Below are positions 12,462 to 32,535 of a stretch of 64,000 nucleotides of DNA, piece by piece. The notes below the pieces were generated by a model, which saw only the letters and a program-made list of their open reading frames with translations, was not told the origin of the DNA and searched no databases. Origin of the DNA: Macrostomum hystrix. Its lineage: Eukaryota > Animalia > Platyhelminthes. The stretch lies in NCBI GenBank assembly GCA_950097015.1, contig CATNEN010000002.1, forward strand, positions 4,092,001 through 4,156,000, read 5' to 3'. Position 1 is the first letter of the stretch. Every line of letters begins with the position of its first letter. The translations under genes were made by a program, and so were the position numbers.

Positions 12462-15400
12462 CTAGAAGGCATCCTCTTCGGCTCCGTTTTCCCCAGTTGA
12501 GAGCTGCAGTCGATCTTCGACCTCTGCATCGACAGCGGATCCGTTAAGACAGTATGCATCGTCCCTGTTATCGCTGACGTTTTCAGGATATTCGCTGGGC
12601 ACCAGCTGCAACGCGCCGCAGCCTTCGCTGCCGATGGAGTTGTTCGACTGGTCCATGTCGATCTCCTGCTCGTCGTTGGCATCGGGATCAACAAGACGAA
12701 GGCGCTTGGCTGTGCCGGCGGGAATGCCCCAGTCTTCCGGCTCGCAGGGAAGTAGCTCAGAATCATCACTGTGTACAAGGGGATCAGGCGGTAGGGAATC
12801 ATAGAATCTCTCGGAATCTCCCGACTCTCTGAATCTCCCGACTCTCTGAATCTCCCGACTCTCTGAATCTCCCGACTCTCTGAATCTCCCGACTCTCTGA
12901 ATCTCCCAATTCTCTGAATCTCCCAATTCTCTGAATCTCCCAATTCTCTGAATCTCCTTACTATCTTTATCTCCCGACTCCCTGAATCTCCCAATTCTCT
13001 GAATCTCCCGACTCTCTGAATCTCCCAATTCTCTGAATCTCCCAATTCTCTGAATCTCCCGACTCTCTGAATCTCCCAATTCTCTGAATCTCCTTACTAT
13101 CTTTATCTCCCGACTCTCTGAATCTCCCAATTCTCTGAATCTCCCGACTCTCTGAATCTCCCGACTCTCTGAATCTCCCGACTCTCTGAATCTCCTTACT
13201 ATCTTTATCTCCCGACTCTCTGAATCTCCCGATTCTCTGAATCTCCCAATTCTCTGAATCTCCCGACTCTCTGAATCTCCCGACTCTCTGAATCTCCCGA
13301 CTCTCTGAATCTCCCGACTCTCTGAATCTCCCGACTCTCTGAATCTCCCAATTCTCTGAATCTCCCGACTCTCTGAATCTCCCAATTCTCTGAATCTCCC
13401 GACTCTCTGAATCTCCCGACTCTCTGAATCTCCCAATTCTCTGAATCTCCCAATTCTCTGAATCTCCCGACTCTCTGAATCTCCCGACTCTCTGAATCTC
13501 CCGACTCTCTGAATCTCCCAATTCTCTGAATCTCCCAATTCTCTGAATCTCCCAATTCTCTGAATCTCCCGACTCTCTGAATCTCCCGACTCTCTGAATC
13601 TCCCAATTCTCTGAATCTCCCGACTCTCTGAATCTCCCGACTCTCTGAATCTCCCGACTCTCTGAATCTCCCGACTCTCTGAATCTCCCGACTCTCTGAA
13701 TCTCCCGACTCTCTGAATCTCCCGACTCTCTGAATCTCCCGACATTCTTAATCCCGCGGATTCTCTGCTGGCTCACCGAAGATCTTCTTTGTATCGCATT
13801 GCCAGCTCCTCCTTGCCTAGCACACTTCCGTCCTGTAAAACGTTTATCATAAGTTTTGTTACTCGTCTGATCGATCTTACTTACAGTAGGGTAGGCAAAC
13901 CGTAAATAATCTACTTGCACTTACATCCGTAGCGTCAGCCGCACTGCCAGGAGATCCAAAACCGCACAGCTCCGCCTTCACTGAGGACCTGGGGTCAACG
14001 AAAATAGAGGCGGATTGATTAGAGAGAAACTGGAGGAAGGCCGTTTGCTGTTTTTCTTAACTCGCGGAGCGAGCAGCGTTGTTTACGATAGACGCGGGAT
14101 GAGACAGTTTGTACTTTTAACTGGCCAAGCGAAATTTCTTTACCTTGTTTTCTGACGGGGCTGTCTATGTATTTGTGTGCATCCCACGCCGTGTTTCTCG
14201 TCCCGTCAACATACGATCTTGCTCTCGTGGCCCCTGCCTCTCTCTCTCTCTCTCTCGTCTCCCTGTTTTGACTCCTCTTCCCTCACCTCCCGTGGGTGTT
14301 TGTGTTGTCCCAGTCAACAACACGCGTCACAAGGGACATGCAGCCTTGTGTGTGGACTGTGGATGCCATGCAGCTGCCTCCCACCCGCCCTGTTTCTGCC
14401 TGTGCATATTAATGTATACAATTATAAATAGTTGCTAACCGATATGTACATTTAGTTTGTCTCTAAGGCGTCAACCAGGTATCCAGTTCATTATTATACC
14501 CTTTCCTTTCTAAACAGAAGGAATGAAGGCTGAGCTAATCCTAGGCAAGAAAACACAGGTAGGTAATTTACAGAGTGCAAGAATTCAAGAATTAGAATTA
14601 ACAGCATCAGCCATGAATGACATTGACCATGATGTTCAGAGTTTGTTTTATTAATATGATCACATGATATATGATAACCTGTTTATGCGTTTAATCCCTT
14701 TTTAGCAACTATCTCTCTATTTTAAACTGTCAATTGGGATTCGAATTAGCAATCCAATCAGTTTAAATTAGTTAATCAAGATCTTCTAAAGACGCAATGA
14801 CCACTTCAATTACGACTGGCCCAGCTGCGGTCAAGAATTGGGTTGAGGCTTTTATTTAGTGCACTGGTGCGATCTAAATTACAATACTAGGACCCCCTTT
14901 GGATTATTGGTTGATGGTTTTGCGGAGGGTAATTGCGCATAACTCGGTACAACTTTGTCTCAGTTTACAGTTGACAAGTGCGCCTCATTATTTCTCACTA
15001 ACGGGTAGAAATTTCCGGAATTTCCAGGTATTGGAACTTACAAAGAATTTCCGCCGCTGCCGCCTCCGCCACCGCCACTGCCGCCGCTGGCTCCTCGTTG
15101 TAGTCGCCGTCGATAGAACTCAGCTTCATCAACAGTCCAAACAGCGCCTTTGACATTTTCGACACGCATGAAGCACTTGTGAAGTGACAGGTTATGACGC
15201 ACTGCGTTCTGTTGGGATCAAAGCAGTTTTGTGAGATTTCAAGTGTTATAATATATGCATGGCATGACTATGAATAGCAAATTCGTTTTATGAAGACAAT
15301 GCGGAATTGCAGCAGCATCTTAACCAATTAGTCTTTTGATAAGTCTTTGTCAGGTCAAATGATATTTTCTCCAATCAAGATATCCAAGTAAATATAAACA

Positions 15401-25476: not shown

Positions 25477-28400
25477 CTAGCTCGTTGCTTGATAGCCGAC
25501 ACCGCAGCGTCTTGTAAAGTTGATGTTGCTCTCGTAGTCGAGAAATTTGGAAGCTCGCAGTGGATCTTTATTGTCCGTAAGTGTCGGAGCCTGTTGGTTA
25601 TCGATCGGTTTTTAGATGCTTGGATTGCTTGTTCTATACTTAATAATATTTTTTTTAACTTTTGCAAGTGACAGTATATTCCCGATCAGACTAGAGAAGG
25701 GTTCTGATTATATCATGTTGGTATTCTCGCAGTACTCTTTATAGCTACACAAACGAGTGCGTAGTTAATGCTTACTTTCAAATCAAATGATCTCACATGT
25801 TGGGAACTTTTCTAGAGCGCCCAATTTAGCAGGAGAATCTACCGCAGAATGATATGATTTAGCTGGAGCTCTCACCTGCAGGAAGATGCCCAACATGCCC
25901 ACAACGCTCGATAGGCCGAAGCAGTATAGAAAGATCCTGTCCAAAATCAGAGCAATGTACTTCCACTCCTCCTCAGTGTTAGAGACTGTCTCATTCTCCC
26001 GGATGCGTCTGGCGATGGAGCGGACGCCGCGCAGCGCTGACAGAATATTGGCCACGCACTCCCGATCTGCCCGACTGGCCCCGGGCAGATGGTAGCGACG
26101 AAGCCGACGAGACAGGCTGCTTCTTCTGCTGCCGCTGCCAGTGGCTCCGGAATCACTGTCGCTGTCCCCTAAGTGATAGAGCACTTCAATTCATTGAAGG
26201 AAAACCTTCTTGAAGGCAAACCTGCTTGAAGGCAAACCTTCTTGAAGGCAAACCTGCTTGAAGGCAAACCTGCTTGAAGGCAAACCTTCTTGAAGGCAAA
26301 CCTTCTTGAAGGCAAACCTGCTTGAAGGCAAACCTTCTTGAAGGCAAACCTTCTTGAAGGCAAACCTTCTTGAAGGCAAACCTTCTTGAAGGCAAACCTT
26401 CTTGAAGGCAAACCTTCTTGAAGGCAAACCTTCTTGAAGGCAAACCTTCTTGAAGGCAAACCTTCTTGAAGGCAAACCTTCTTGAAGGCAAACCTTCTTG
26501 AAGGCAAACCTTCTTGAAGGCAAACCTTCTTGAAGGCCAACTAAAGATACCTGAACGAGGCTCACCATCGTCATCTAAGGTTGATCGCGACAGTGTGTCA
26601 TCCACGAGCTTATCCTCTCCATCGCCAATGTCGGGCCGATCCATCAACAGCGGCCCAGGCAGCACCTGCAGAAATAGCCGCTTGGCCCAGACCGGCACCC
26701 TGTAGATGTCTGGGGGACTGTAGCGAACGTTTAGCACCACGGTGGACACGAACAGGGACAGGCTGATGAGGATCATTGTGAACAGCAGGTACTTTGTGAT
26801 CAGCGGCACAACAAGAGAAGTTGTGGGCGTCAGGTCGAACACCAGCAGTAGAAACACAGTCAAGGCAAGTAGGATGAAAGTGCTCAATGTCATCTTCTCT
26901 TGCGTGTCGGAGGGCAGCAGAAACACGAAGCTGGTCAGACAGCTGATGGCAATGCAGGGTGCAATCAGGTTTGTACCATAGAATAGGGGCTGACGACGAA
27001 ACGTCACGCTGTGGTGTTTGGGATAGGCGGTGTATGTAATTATACGAATAATTAAATGGTTATAACTCAGCTTTATTGTAGTAAAAATGTACAGTAGAAA
27101 GCGAAGGAAGCTGTATATGTTATTTATTTGTTAAGCTAATCCCAATCGCCTCAACACCTTCAATGGGCTTTAACTGGAAGCATAGCGACGCTGCCCGCCC
27201 ATCAAAAATATTTGGCTCTCTAACTATGCATCGATTGCATAAAAATGCCACAACCTCCCACACTCACAGGAACGTGATGTCAAGGTAGGGCTCAACGCAA
27301 CAGGCGTATTTCACAATGTTCCTAGTTGCTGACACCCGCATTAGGTCCCACTCAGCGCTCTCCACATAGTCCGCCAAATCGATTGCGTAGTCGATATCCG
27401 ATTCGCAGTTGTCGAAATTGCGCCGATTTCTACCCTCGTCGTCGGCTTTCTGAGCCACGTGCCGCATGTCAATATGCAGGCCGTGGTAGGTCCACGTGCC
27501 CATCTTCAGCTTGCAGTCCTGCGTGTCGAATGGGAAGAATTCAACGTTGATGTCGCAGGAGCTGTCGTAGGTGATTGGTGGCTTCCACACTACGAGGCCT
27601 TTGTGGTTGACTTTGACTCTGGTGGAGGTGGCGCTCAGGTCCCAGTTGGTGCCAGTGCTGCAAGGTGGGGCAGTCATGCGTTTCGTGTCCTCAGTGAACT
27701 TCAGTTAACTTAAATCCATTCAGTAAGCAGCTAAATTTGATGCCCTAGGCTTAGGATTACTTTAATCCTCCCCTCCCCTAAACCTTTTACACTCTTGAAT
27801 CCTTCACTCCCCTGAATCCTTTACACTGTTGAATCCTCCCCTCCCCTGAATCCTTTACACTCTTGAATCCTCCCCTCCCCTGAATCCTCCCCTCCCATGA
27901 ATCCTCCCCTCCCCTGAATCCTCCCCTCCCCTGAATCCTCCCCTCCCCTGAATCCTCCCCTCCCCTGAATCCTCCCCTCCCATGAATCCTTCACTCTCCT
28001 GAATCCTTCACTCTCCTGAATCCTTCACTCTCCTGAATCCTCCTCTCTCCTGAATCCTCCCCTCCCATGAATCCTCCCCTCCCCTGAATCCTCCCCTCCC
28101 ATGAATCCTCCCCTCCCCTGAATCCTCCCCTCCCCTGAATCCTCCCCTCCCATGAATCCTCCCCTCCCCTGAATCCTCCCCTCCCATGAATCCTTCACTC
28201 TCCTGAATCCTTCACTCTCCTGAATCCTTCACTCTCCTGAATCCTCCTCTCTCCTGAATCCTCCCCTCCCATGAATCCTCCCCTCCCCTGAATCCTCCCC
28301 TCCCATGAATCCTCCCCTCCCCTGAATCCTCCCCTCCCCTGAATCCTCCCCTCCCATGAATCCTCCCCTCCCCTGAATCCTCCCCTCCCATGAATCCTTC

Positions 28401-29465
28401 ACTCTCCTGAATCCTTCACTCTCCTGAATCCTTCACTCTCCTGAATCCTCCTCTCTCCTGAATCCCAAACTCTCTTGAATCCTTCCCTTTCCTGAATCCT
28501 ACACTCTCCTAATCCCTCACTCTCCTGTGCTTCCAATGCGAGTTGAAATTACCATGGAGGTGATGCATGGGCTCCTAGTTTTTTGAATCGATAATAAGTC
28601 ACGCTGCTCCACTCACTTTGAGTACAAAACCACATCCGGTGTCCACAGGGCATCGGACGGCAGGATAATCTTGCTGATACCGTCATAGTCATTGGGGTCC
28701 CAGCGGAAGAAGGGATCGTGCCATTCCTGATAAACCCACAGGTTGAGCGATATTATCTGGTTCTTCTCGTCCACATTCATCAGCTGGACCAGACTGAGAT
28801 TCATGTACATTATCACTGGCTCGGAGACATTCGCTACTGGCCTGGCATACTTGTAGCCCTCGCGATTAGTGTAGAACCTTTTGTATAGCTGGTCCAGCGA
28901 TGGATCAACGTCACTAGCTGGTAATGGTACAAGCGGAAAATGTAAAAAACCAAACGTTCTTTTATTTTTTACCCTCCTATACCTATAGTACTTCGTACCC
29001 AGCTGTGAGATTGGTACCAGCATCAGCTAGGGTAGAAATTAAGGTAGGCTTGGCCAGTGTCCAGTGTACGGACTGAACAGTTGTACACGTGGCGCCTTTG
29101 GAAGCGTCACACATTAGCTGCGGCTGTGGCTGCACACGTGGCCATTTGGCCTAGGTGTCATTTCTGTCTATCCATCTATCTATAGGTTCGTTTTAAATAG
29201 TTGTACTTCGTTTTGGAGACTTTTCACTTCAATATGGTTGTTAGTCATAACTTCTGGAATGTACGTCTTTGGAGCCAGTGTACTCTGCGGCTTGCGTAAT
29301 CTTTAAGTTTAAACCAAAGGTTCCAAGTAAAACTAATTAGTCAATCAAATTCTCACCTGCTGGTTGAACAACTTTGCACAGGAGCAACAGGTAAGTGACT
29401 GCAAGCAGTACCAGCCATTTCTTGCCACACAGCAGGTGACCAAAATGATCAAACTCCGAAGCCAT
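25477..29465 (-). CDS. Nicotinic acetylcholine receptor alpha-type subunit
   Basis: Exons 29465-29357 (signal peptide), 28917-28617, 27657-27268, 27008-26566 (or alternative donor 26551), 26168-25876, 25590-25477; all phases match. Cys-loop CDINVEFFPFDTQDC; loop B WTYHG; vicinal cysteines KYACCVEPY; M2 QEKMTLS..LLALTVFLLL; M4 DRIFLYCF; tail FLQAPTL. Confidence 0.95.
26196..26537. repeat. 16-bp intronic array (GAAGGCAAACCTTCTT)n in the nAChR gene
   Basis: About 21 units lying between the donor at 26565 and the acceptor at 26169. Confidence 0.96.
27765..28510. repeat. 17-bp intronic array (CCTGAATCCTCCCCTCC)n with 204-bp higher-order period
   Basis: Variant block CATGAATCCTTCACTCTC recurs at 27981, 28185 and 28389. 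Confidence 0.95.
29050..29150 (+). mobile_element. Dispersed repeat family B fragment (nAChR intron 1)
   Basis: GGACTGAACAGTTGTAC..TAGCTGCGGCTGT shared with 11250-11310 and 50040-50115 (reverse). Confidence 0.5.
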
Positions 29466-30723
29466 GCAGTGCTGAACTTAGACTGCTGCTAAGTCTGACG
29501 GAAGCATTAAGCCTTCCATTGCTTCTGGAAGTGAAACATCTACCGCAGATAATAACAGCAAGGAGCCAAAAGTTAACAGAATACCGATTCCGTTTAAACT
29601 TTGAGTACAGCCCACTAATAAGCCACTAAAGAGAGAAAAGAAAGAGAGAGAAGCTTGAGTCCACATTGCAGCCTAGTACACTATCCCTCATTTACTGTTG
29701 GCCTCTCAATGTCTCTCGCTAAAGCCCAGCTCCACCCTGCCTGCACCCCTGCACTGACCAACCATCAGCAGCCATACCTGTTGGCGGAGAAGAACTGGCA
29801 AGTAAGACAGAGAGAACTAGCTCTATTAACTATGGAATAATAAAGCCAGATGCAGAAAATTACGGTACTTCAAGCAGACTATCAACAACCCCGCGACATC
29901 AACCTGTCTGCCCGCCTCTCTTTCTCGCTCTCTCACCTCCGAGCAATTAGCTTTACTACGAGCTATATGACAAAAAACGTTTCAAGAAATGGCCGTGTAT
30001 GCTGATGAAAGTCTCATCGCCTCATTTTCATGCCACGATATACCTGCTCTTCGGTTTCTCCTATCTGTCAGGTGTGCTCTGTGTTGTTCTCAGCTCGTTA
30101 CTGTTCCTCACTAAATGGCTATAGTCAGGTCCATCGCTAATTCATCCTTGTGTTTTTTTTAATTAAGATCAATGGTAAGATTCTGAGAAAACTAGACGAT
30201 AACCTATAGACGATGTCTATGGCTTTTATTTGATTCGTATAGACTGTAGGTGACGTCTATAGATTGTTGATAGTGTTTATCCATAGACCGAATGTGATAT
30301 ATCATTAGGTTCTAGTGGATGTCTATAGCTTTTTTGTGATGCCTATTGATTTGGCGTCTATAGATTGCATGTCATATCTATAGCTGAATCCTACACTTTG
30401 TGAATCCTGCACAAGTCTATAGATGAGGCCTACAGATTGTAGGCGACATCGATAGCTTTTAGAAGAGGTCTATAGATTTTTGTTAGTGTCTATAGATTGT
30501 ATGTGTTGTCTAGAAACTGTAGGTGGATACGGGTAGAAAAGTGCTAATGCATATTGTTGTATTCTTGAAGTAACGAATACAGAGATTCCGATTGTAGTGT
30601 TGGTAAATGTAAGTATAGCGCCGAAAGGAGCACTCGGCAGTCGACTGGATAAGCGTGTATTTGTAACAGCAGTATTATTAAATACTGGAAAGGTCTTGAG
30701 TGTGTGCACCGCGCGGGGGTTTC

Positions 30724-30849
30724 TATTTATAGCCTGGGGAGCGAGTGGGAGAACTTTCTAGAAAGTTCTCATAGATAGCCCGCGGGGGAGGCGCAGAGAA
30801 GATTCTGGAAACAACAGAGTGTTATAACAAGTGGTAGAAAGTTCTAGAA
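30724..30849 (-). promoter_or_regulatory. Heat-shock promoter: TATA box plus three perfect heat-shock elements
   Basis: TATAAATA on the - strand at 30731-30724. HSE1 AGAACTTTCTAGAAAGTTCT at 30750-30769 (4 nGAAn units); HSE2 GAAgaTTCtgGAA at 30798-30810; HSE3 GAAagTTCtaGAA at 30837-30849. Confidence 0.85.
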
Positions 30850-31964
30850 AACTATTTACGGAATTATCGTAACGAAACCCACAACACATATTCTGAGGAC
30901 TTCAATAGTGAATTACATTAGAACCATTGTTGTATTTTAGCTTGCGAAGTAATTTTCAGATAAAGAACAAGTCTGTGAACATGAAACATGGAAATGCATA
31001 AATTTCTGTTAATCTAAGAGTACAAAAACTCGACATACTGATAACGAATTGTCTGGAAAAGTCTTTAAAATAAAAAAAGATAAACATATTATTTATAGAA
31101 CAGGTATAAACTCTACTAGTTTGTTATCATGTTTGCTAACGCATGGTACGCCCCGGTCGAAAACCAACTTTTTTTCGTTTTGCTAATTTTATTCGCGCAA
31201 ACGTGAATCATACCTCAAGTTCCCCCACGCCTGTACATCATAGGGTGTACAGTGATATTCTAGCTATTAGAACATTCTACAAGGTACTAGAAAGCATGGC
31301 CCAATTGCGTGCGACCTGAAGTAAATATCGAGTCACAAAACCTTAAAAAATATGTACACTCATCCCTCCAATCCGTTGCAAGAACAAAAAAACGCAACAT
31401 TCATGGACAGTGACAGAGAAACATGGAGAGGCGTGAGCCGTACATATTTGGTTCCATGTTGCTTTTGTTAAGCAGCCATATTTTTTTGCTATTATAGCAA
31501 ATTACCAACCGTTTCATATTCCAAATCAGTTTATTTAAAAGCTCTATTGTCTGCAATTCTCTGTCACTGCAACTGCGATTTAGAAACAACACAGGTAAGC
31601 AATCTATGAACTGTCGCTTTTTATGACATTCTCGAGGTGCGATAAATTGAAAATAGTCTTAGCATCGTGTGTGTATATCATTTCATTGAGTTCTTGATTG
31701 TAATCGGCATGTATGTATTGCTTTAAAATTATGTACTCGTAATGCAAGATAGAAAGCTAAAGACTTGTTTTCTACCGTTACTAAGGACGCTTATCTAGGC
31801 TTGTTAAGTCCACCAGACCACCGAGCGCTGTGGCTTAGTGTCTGGTCTAACGTAGTTGTCGGATTATAATCCTCCAATTCTTCGCCTCTTTTGGGCCTTC
31901 GCCTTCGTCTTACGTTTTCATGTACTTTTAGTCCCCTTAACACATTAGTTGCAGCTAACCTTAT

Positions 31965-32140
31965 TTAATCCCCTGCTTGGCCCGGCCTATTGGCTATTAA
32001 TTCTAATTTATTATTTAATCGGCCTAGGCCGTTAAATGATTTAACGGCCTAGGCCGATTAAACATATAGTCTATGGTCACAGTTGCTGTAAACAGTTTTA
32101 GTAGTGCAATCTCGGGAGCCGGGCCAAGCTTTAGGATTAA
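31965..32140. mobile_element. Fold-back/MITE-like element with TTAA ends and an internal 49-bp palindrome
   Basis: TTAATCC..GCTTGGCCCGGC at 31965-31986 inverted to GCCGGGCCAAGC..GGATTAA at 32118-32140. Perfect 24-bp arms 32014-32037 / 32039-32062. Confidence 0.6.
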
Positions 32141-32271: not shown

Positions 32272-32535
32272 TCTATACTTATTGTCTGTGACCTCATCAT
32301 TTGCGTTTACCACTTTTATATCTATGTACAAGACCACCTCTCCGTTACAGGTCTCAAGCGTGTCCATGTTCCTTTCTTTCTGCTTAAACTTTTTGCTTCC
32401 ACTGCCACTAAATAAACTCTATCCAAACTGCTAATTAGTTTGTTGTCCAAGCGACAGTACACTTAACTAGTTAAACATTTATGTAGTCAATAGATGGTAG
32501 TAACAGAATATCGAATTAACATCACCCACAGCAAA

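Follow-up and report, generated by a model that had tools for sequence, protein, structure and literature searches.

A heat-shock promoter without a heat-shock gene

Within a 64,000-nucleotide stretch of the Macrostomum hystrix genome (hereafter, the window) lies what looks like an hsp70-style heat-shock promoter with no heat-shock protein encoded downstream, which raises the question of what such a promoter belongs to. An earlier note on this DNA had offered three answers: (a) a heat-induced long non-coding RNA of about 500 nt, (b) a stress-inducible alternative promoter of a nicotinic acetylcholine receptor (nAChR)-like gene, or (c) a heat-responsive promoter brought in by a transposon or a solo long terminal repeat (LTR). 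Our analysis supports the third, with exact LTR boundaries, a target-site duplication and 51 copies in the genome, whereas the first two did not hold as independent explanations and the accompanying claim of novelty had to be given up. The orphan promoter is very probably the U3 region of a solo LTR of a young Ty3/gypsy retrotransposon, acting as a heat-inducible promoter driven by heat-shock factor (HSF). The apparent oddity of a heat-shock promoter without a heat-shock gene is thereby resolved as a transposon remnant.

By motif search, three perfect heat-shock elements (HSEs) and a TATAAATA box were found on the minus strand between window positions 30724 and 30849 (Table 1), in agreement with the earlier note in the number of HSEs and in the distance of the box from the proximal one. 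The palindrome of four nGAAn units described there is perfect and extends further than stated, to 22 bp (30749-30770), enclosing the four-unit HSE. Such arrays of three, three and four alternating inverted nGAAn units near a TATA box are what is expected of an HSF-dependent promoter. From the spacing, transcription is predicted to start near position 30700, around LTR position 185 and about 30 bp past the TATAAATA box. Downstream, the largest open reading frame (ORF) encodes 79 amino acids and an AATAAA signal is present at 30230-30225, both as previously described.

The three-unit HSE pattern matched five times in the window against 1.2 matches expected from shuffles, and only one of the five (at 15008) lies outside the LTR cluster. 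When one mismatch was allowed, 42 matches were obtained compared to 26 +/- 6 expected by chance, 17 of them from one tandem repeat. The 'weaker HSE-like sites' previously pointed out at 31046-31058 and 31270-31282 are one-mismatch matches only and, since chance supplies about 26 of these per window, are not meaningful.

Table 1. Coordinates of the solo LTR, its promoter motifs and its surroundings (window positions), and domains of the element ORF (residues)
Feature	Position	Strand	Remarks
Solo LTR	30555-30886	minus	332 bp; TGTTG...CAACA termini; from genome repeat search and boundary comparison
Target-site duplication ATATG, upstream copy	30887-30891	minus	5 bases before TGTTG
Target-site duplication ATATG, downstream copy	30550-30554	minus	5 bases after CAACA; equal to upstream copy
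Distal HSE	30837-30849	minus	three perfect units; LTR positions 38-50
Middle HSE	30798-30810	minus	three perfect units; LTR positions 77-89
Proximal HSE	30751-30768	minus	four perfect units; LTR positions 119-136
TATAAATA box	30731-30724	minus	18 bp below palindrome core; LTR position 156
Degenerate CTATAGAC minisatellite	30204-30495	minus	single-copy flank; pre-existing target DNA, outside the element
nAChR-like exon 1	29357-29578	minus	ATG at 29465; 5' end at 29565-29578 in contigs of four runs
zf-CCHC (Pfam)	residue 230		element ORF
RVT_1 (Pfam)	residues 546-671		element ORF
RNase H (Pfam)	residues 735-869		element ORF
Integrase_H2C2 (Pfam)	residues 985-1039		element ORF
rve (Pfam)	residues 1073-1145		element ORF

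The promoter is the U3 region of a solo LTR

A genomic copy-number search of 30150-31300, one of the checks that the earlier note had proposed, gave a clear answer: the only part repeated in the M. hystrix genome is the segment that we delimit as the LTR (about 335 bp in the search), which recurs at 97-100% identity in at least 40 places, and the flanks (30150-30552 and 30887-31700) are single copy. The segment is arranged as U3 with the HSEs and the TATA box, followed by R and U5, and it is bounded on both sides by the same five bases, ATATG. No second LTR was found by motif search in the 64-kb window, and the window LTR matches both LTRs of a full-length copy (L021, on C29) without a single difference. 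One LTR with matching ATATG on both sides in otherwise unique DNA identifies a solo LTR; the HSE cluster with its TATA box is not the promoter of a host gene. As an alternative to solo status, a heterozygous full-length insertion may have been collapsed to one LTR by the assembler.

The following history would account for the site. A young Ty3/gypsy element would have inserted about 1 kb upstream of the nAChR-like gene, duplicating the 5-bp target ATATG, after which its two LTRs would have recombined with loss of the internal part. Because the solo LTR keeps the promoter intact, it should fire on heat shock, and transcription would then read through U5 into the flank.

A young Ty3/gypsy family with a putative heat-shock promoter

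Searching the whole genome with a 34-nt pattern around the palindrome revealed 51 LTRs that carry the central HSE: 21 same-strand pairs, one further LTR on contig C11 and 8 singles. Two of the 21 pairs have a shortened internal region, and one, on C35/C36, is an assembly duplicate; in the further shortened pair on C11, the partner LTR was found only by the genome repeat search. The LTR copies are 97-100% identical to the window LTR. Most occur in pairs on the same strand, with 4.73 kb from one start to the next, giving about 22 two-LTR elements of about 5.1 kb each. Six of the singles, the window copy included, are flanked by perfect 5-bp duplications, so that the genome holds at least six solo LTRs. 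Another of the 8 singles is the 5' LTR of a truncated copy, since a primer-binding site follows it, and one has no matching duplication. The duplicated copy (G000:C36:1-6674 and G000:C35:1579313-1587370) is the same element in the same flanks and is probably a separately assembled haplotype of the kind that the genome paper warns of (PMC10468722).

Full-length copies show the anatomy of the superfamily. The three copies L021-L023 are flanked by 5-bp duplications (ATTAC, ATAAC and AGTGG, respectively), a polypurine tract GGTGGGGAGG adjoins the 3' LTR, and an 18-nt primer-binding site starts 9 nt after the 5' LTR and is complementary to the 3' end plus CCA of the host tRNA-Ser(AGA/CGA). The gag-pol ORF is uninterrupted over 1,420 codons in one of three copies read and falls into two pieces in the other two. 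Its domains are listed in Table 1; an aspartic protease was not detected in this ORF by Pfam search at E <= 0.01. With TG...CA termini, a fixed duplication length, the primer-binding site, the polypurine tract and this domain order, the family belongs to Ty3/gypsy (Metaviridae).

Comparison of the two LTRs within single elements gave identities of 332/332, 332/332, 333/333 and 330/332 (99.4-100%). Together with the identity of the window LTR to the LTRs of the C29 copy, this indicates that the family moved very recently. Among 34 LTR hits read, some of which are one copy fetched under two locus ids, the TATAAATA box is kept in all and the complete set of HSE arrays in 32. Per site, the HSEs and TATA box differ between copies 3.6 times less often than the rest of the LTR (4 in 52 nt compared to 78 in 280 nt), a figure that rests on related copies and not on independent events.

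Likeness to the host hsp70 promoter

The genome has four intronless hsp70 genes on contig C33, and HSF DNA-binding domains are encoded at at least four loci. The hsp70 HSE arrays lie at -353, -272 and -206/-201 (the last with four units), followed by TATAAAA at -174. The LTR shares with this promoter the number of arrays, the four units of the proximal one and a TATA box 14-18 bp further on, and differs from it in HSE spacing (39 and 42 bp, compared to 81 and 66 bp in hsp70). Capture of the promoter from hsp70 was considered and rejected: when the LTR was compared by BLAST with the sequences upstream of the four hsp70 genes, the HSE motifs alone matched, the best match being 16 bp. Judging from this alignment, the likeness is best regarded as mimicry or convergence, and no evidence of capture was obtained.

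Heat-induced Ty3 elements of Macrostomum lignano as precedent

The earlier note had taken any of its three options to be a novel heat-stress unit. That claim does not survive comparison with the literature, as HSE-bearing, heat-induced Ty3 elements have already been described, and tested by HSE mutation, in M. lignano (PMC12801592). There, exposure to 37 degrees C induces HSE-bearing Ty3 families more than 250-fold in a matter of minutes; one of them, a Mag family of 19 copies, has three HSEs (PMC12801592). Mutation of the HSEs in an LTR of the Mag family abolished induction of a reporter, and an M. lignano LTR is already in use as a heat-inducible transgene promoter (PMC12801592; bioRxiv 10.1101/2024.12.18.629116).

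The closest published counterpart of the M. hystrix family is the Mag family just mentioned, Mlig-id115|Mag (Ustyantsev et al., Mob DNA 2025, PMC12801592). Host genus, superfamily, an LTR design of three canonical HSEs followed by a TATA box, a copy number of about 20 and the occurrence of solo LTRs near genes are the same, and its HSE form nTTCnaGAAnnTTC fits all three arrays of the M. hystrix LTR. The host species differs, the comparison is one of layout, and heat induction of the M. hystrix LTR is proposed by analogy only. The public proteins nearest to the M. hystrix family pol, found by protein search in a snail, sponges and contigs, have 63-76% identity to it, and M. lignano pol is not among the best 120 hits. 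Close orthology to Mlig-id115 is unproven, as the search of public data gave no protein above 65-76% identity. Membership of the Mag clade is hinted at, indirectly, by the single gag-pol ORF, the size of about 5 kb and the nearest Atlas clusters, named 'K02A2.6-like'. The published M. hystrix genome paper makes no mention of LTRs or retrotransposons (PMC10468722), and no description of the HSE-bearing family was found in the literature searched, its kind being known from M. lignano. With M. hystrix, a second and fairly distant species of Macrostomum is now seen to have LTR retrotransposons that copy the host heat-shock promoter.

By analogy with the M. lignano Ty3 families, we infer that HSF binds the LTR and that heat induces it, the start site being predicted from spacing: HSF trimers would bind the LTRs under heat stress and thereby cause a burst of element transcription. 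The 332-bp LTR is accordingly a compact candidate for a heat-inducible promoter in M. hystrix transgenesis, as judged from the M. lignano LTR reporter.

Similar designs are known further afield. In ONSEN/ATCOPIA78 of Arabidopsis and other Brassicaceae, HSEs in the LTR are likewise bound by heat-shock factors and trigger transcription on heating; since ONSEN is a Ty1/copia element of a plant host, the likeness is one of convergence and not of kinship. Helitron1_CE of Caenorhabditis elegans likewise disperses HSF sites over the genome of an animal, although this transposon family is of the rolling-circle DNA type and not an LTR element. The hsr-omega locus of Drosophila and human Satellite III share with the present site a heat-shock promoter without protein-coding sequence downstream, but they are host loci with long tandem repeats that function in nuclear stress bodies, whereas here an LTR adjoins a unique intergenic minisatellite.

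Does the LTR respond to heat at this locus?

The strongest rival to the reading as a working heat-inducible promoter, though still an improbable one, is that the LTR is not heat-responsive in vivo, being silenced or in need of other factors, so that its HSEs have no measurable effect at the locus. Small-RNA pathways often silence solo LTRs. Nor is the presence of HSEs by itself a guarantee of induction, since two HSE-bearing copia families of M. lignano, each with a single HSE, are not induced (PMC12801592). Against this, every M. lignano family with two or more HSEs is strongly induced (PMC12801592), and the M. hystrix LTR has three arrays including the four-unit palindrome, at an hsp70-like distance from the TATA box; nearly every copy retains them, in a family that clearly transposed very recently.

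Neighbouring genes and the possibility of co-option

The transcript evidence that we could draw on consists of contigs of four public runs from one study, unstranded and of unrecorded kind; we consider them RNA-like because they are spliced. In these contigs the nAChR-like exon 1 is spliced from 29357 to 28917 in frame, which agrees with the ATG assigned to the gene by the earlier note, and the downstream exons match Neur_chan_LBD and Neur_chan_memb (Pfam). A splice acceptor placed at 29472 in that note is contradicted by the contigs of all four runs, which run unspliced across this position. On the other side of the LTR, a divergent LRAT-like gene starts near 32500, about 1.6 kb away. A neighbouring exon is 84% identical to an M. 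lignano protein, the next best match being 39%.

These positions bear on the idea that the solo LTR has been co-opted as a stress-inducible alternative promoter or enhancer of the nAChR-like or the divergent LRAT-like gene, which we regard as more improbable still than a silent LTR. In its favour, the LTR, 977 bp upstream of the mapped 5' end of the nAChR-like gene, points the same way as that gene, and HSEs work in either orientation. ONSEN insertions make neighbouring Arabidopsis genes heat-responsive. In M. lignano, moreover, two solo LTRs of HSE families lie less than 2 kb from mildly heat-induced genes (PMC12801592). On the other hand, none of the contigs that begin at the nAChR 5' end is linked to the LTR, and selection can hardly be argued for so recent an insertion, the LTR being 100% identical to that of a full-length copy. 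Option (b) falls as an independent explanation, with no LTR-nAChR junction in the contigs, and an effect on the receptor gene would at most be a side effect of the LTR.

Two repeats were noticed beside these genes. A 16-bp tandem repeat of 21.8 copies with 97% matches occupies 26194-26541, after the nAChR transmembrane exon; it stays in the same open frame and would encode a 16-residue peptide seven times, and may be either a coding repeat of the cytoplasmic loop or intron sequence. The other, in intergenic DNA upstream of the LRAT-like gene at 32013-32062, has about 1.9 copies of a palindrome-centred 25-bp unit that contains GGCCTAGGCC.

The downstream flank

No contig of the four runs joins the LTR to either flank; LTR contigs run into internal sequence of other element copies. 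Nor do the contigs show a start near 30700, contigs being unable to show starts, strand or induction. Low-depth contigs cover 30244-30521, exactly between the LTR end and the AATAAA signal, and stop short of the LTR. They fit a read-through RNA from the LTR to the AATAAA, but only as a hint, and the signal may be background, since equally low-depth contigs occur upstream of the LTR at 31125-31300.

The flank is occupied by the CTATAGAC minisatellite, whose core occurs in 7 minus-strand copies within 290 bp and once on the plus strand at 30204. The array is not special, because the reversed control pattern is as common: CTATAGAC-core arrays number about 530 per strand genome-wide, compared to about 720-770 for the control. 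Compared to shuffles, the putative 493-nt read-through RNA has the better fold (z = -4.1), a score to which we give no weight as the palindromic CTATAGAC repeats explain the fold. A search of Rfam with 29000-32000 on both strands gave no match at E <= 1.

That a host gene for a heat-induced long non-coding RNA of about 500 nt, of the hsr-omega/SatIII type, lies here behind a merely LTR-like promoter is hardly credible: the short downstream ORF, the AATAAA, the contigs leading up to it and the fold score speak for it, but the promoter lies in a precisely bounded LTR, flanked by a target-site duplication, which is one of about 50 near-identical copies attached to gag-pol ORFs in a family of mobile elements, Rfam offers no match, the low-depth signal recurs on the other side of the LTR and the fold is driven by the minisatellite. 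Option (a) is thus discarded as a separate gene and retained as, at most, a side effect. With the solo LTR as the source, it is plausible that an RNA of about 500 nt arises as its by-product; a non-coding RNA of about 480 nt would then end near the AATAAA at 30230, and any effect on the nAChR-like gene would be a by-product in the same sense.

Probable repeated gain of HSEs by transposons

Six of the public relatives, 63-76% identical in amino acids, were compared for HSEs. The canonical HSE is absent in four and present as one array in the putative U3 in two, so that the HSEs are not a conserved trait of the lineage and were gained sporadically. The M. hystrix genome has a second, unrelated Ty3/gypsy family (L049:1442-5451, at G000:C1:11587400-11594200, and L050), whose pol is 28% identical to that of the main one. 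Its LTRs, of 257 bp, hold three HSE arrays ending about 20 bp before TATAAATA, which suggests that this promoter design was gained independently within a single genome. A third repeat family (L046:2480-2600, L047 and L048), present at 15 or more sites on G000:C1, is a unit of about 3.3 kb with internal tandem repeats and without an ORF of 150 or more amino acids, and in it a TATAAAA box is preceded, at about 70 bp, by a perfect five-unit HSE. The sharing of this design by two unrelated Ty3 families and the third repeat supports repeated convergent gain.

Perfect four-unit HSEs number 163 genome-wide, compared to 24 for the reversed control, and about 50 of the 163 are the exact 18-mer of the proximal HSE described here. 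Among the first 50 listed, 38 belong to the three repeat families. Most of the strongest HSF motifs in the M. hystrix genome thus seem to be transposon-borne. The wider proposition that transposons supply most of the strongest HSF sites of this species, and that solo LTRs serve as ready-made heat switches of host genes, is rather unlikely. If it were true, heat would trigger a read-through RNA across the 1-kb region upstream of the nicotinic-receptor gene or, alternatively, would regulate this gene or the divergent LRAT-like gene, and the locus would exemplify how a transposon had rewired the heat-shock regulon of an animal, very recently and perhaps not in all individuals. The solo LTRs offer natural test cases for the rewiring of heat-shock responses by transposons.

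In other LTR families of the genome (L051, L052 and L054; G000:C1:13731050-13731350 and others), the LTR ends in ...CAACAA and is directly followed by the same tRNA-Ser primer-binding site. The tRNA-Ser genes themselves were found by pattern search. In one of these families, the complementarity extends into the T arm of the tRNA.
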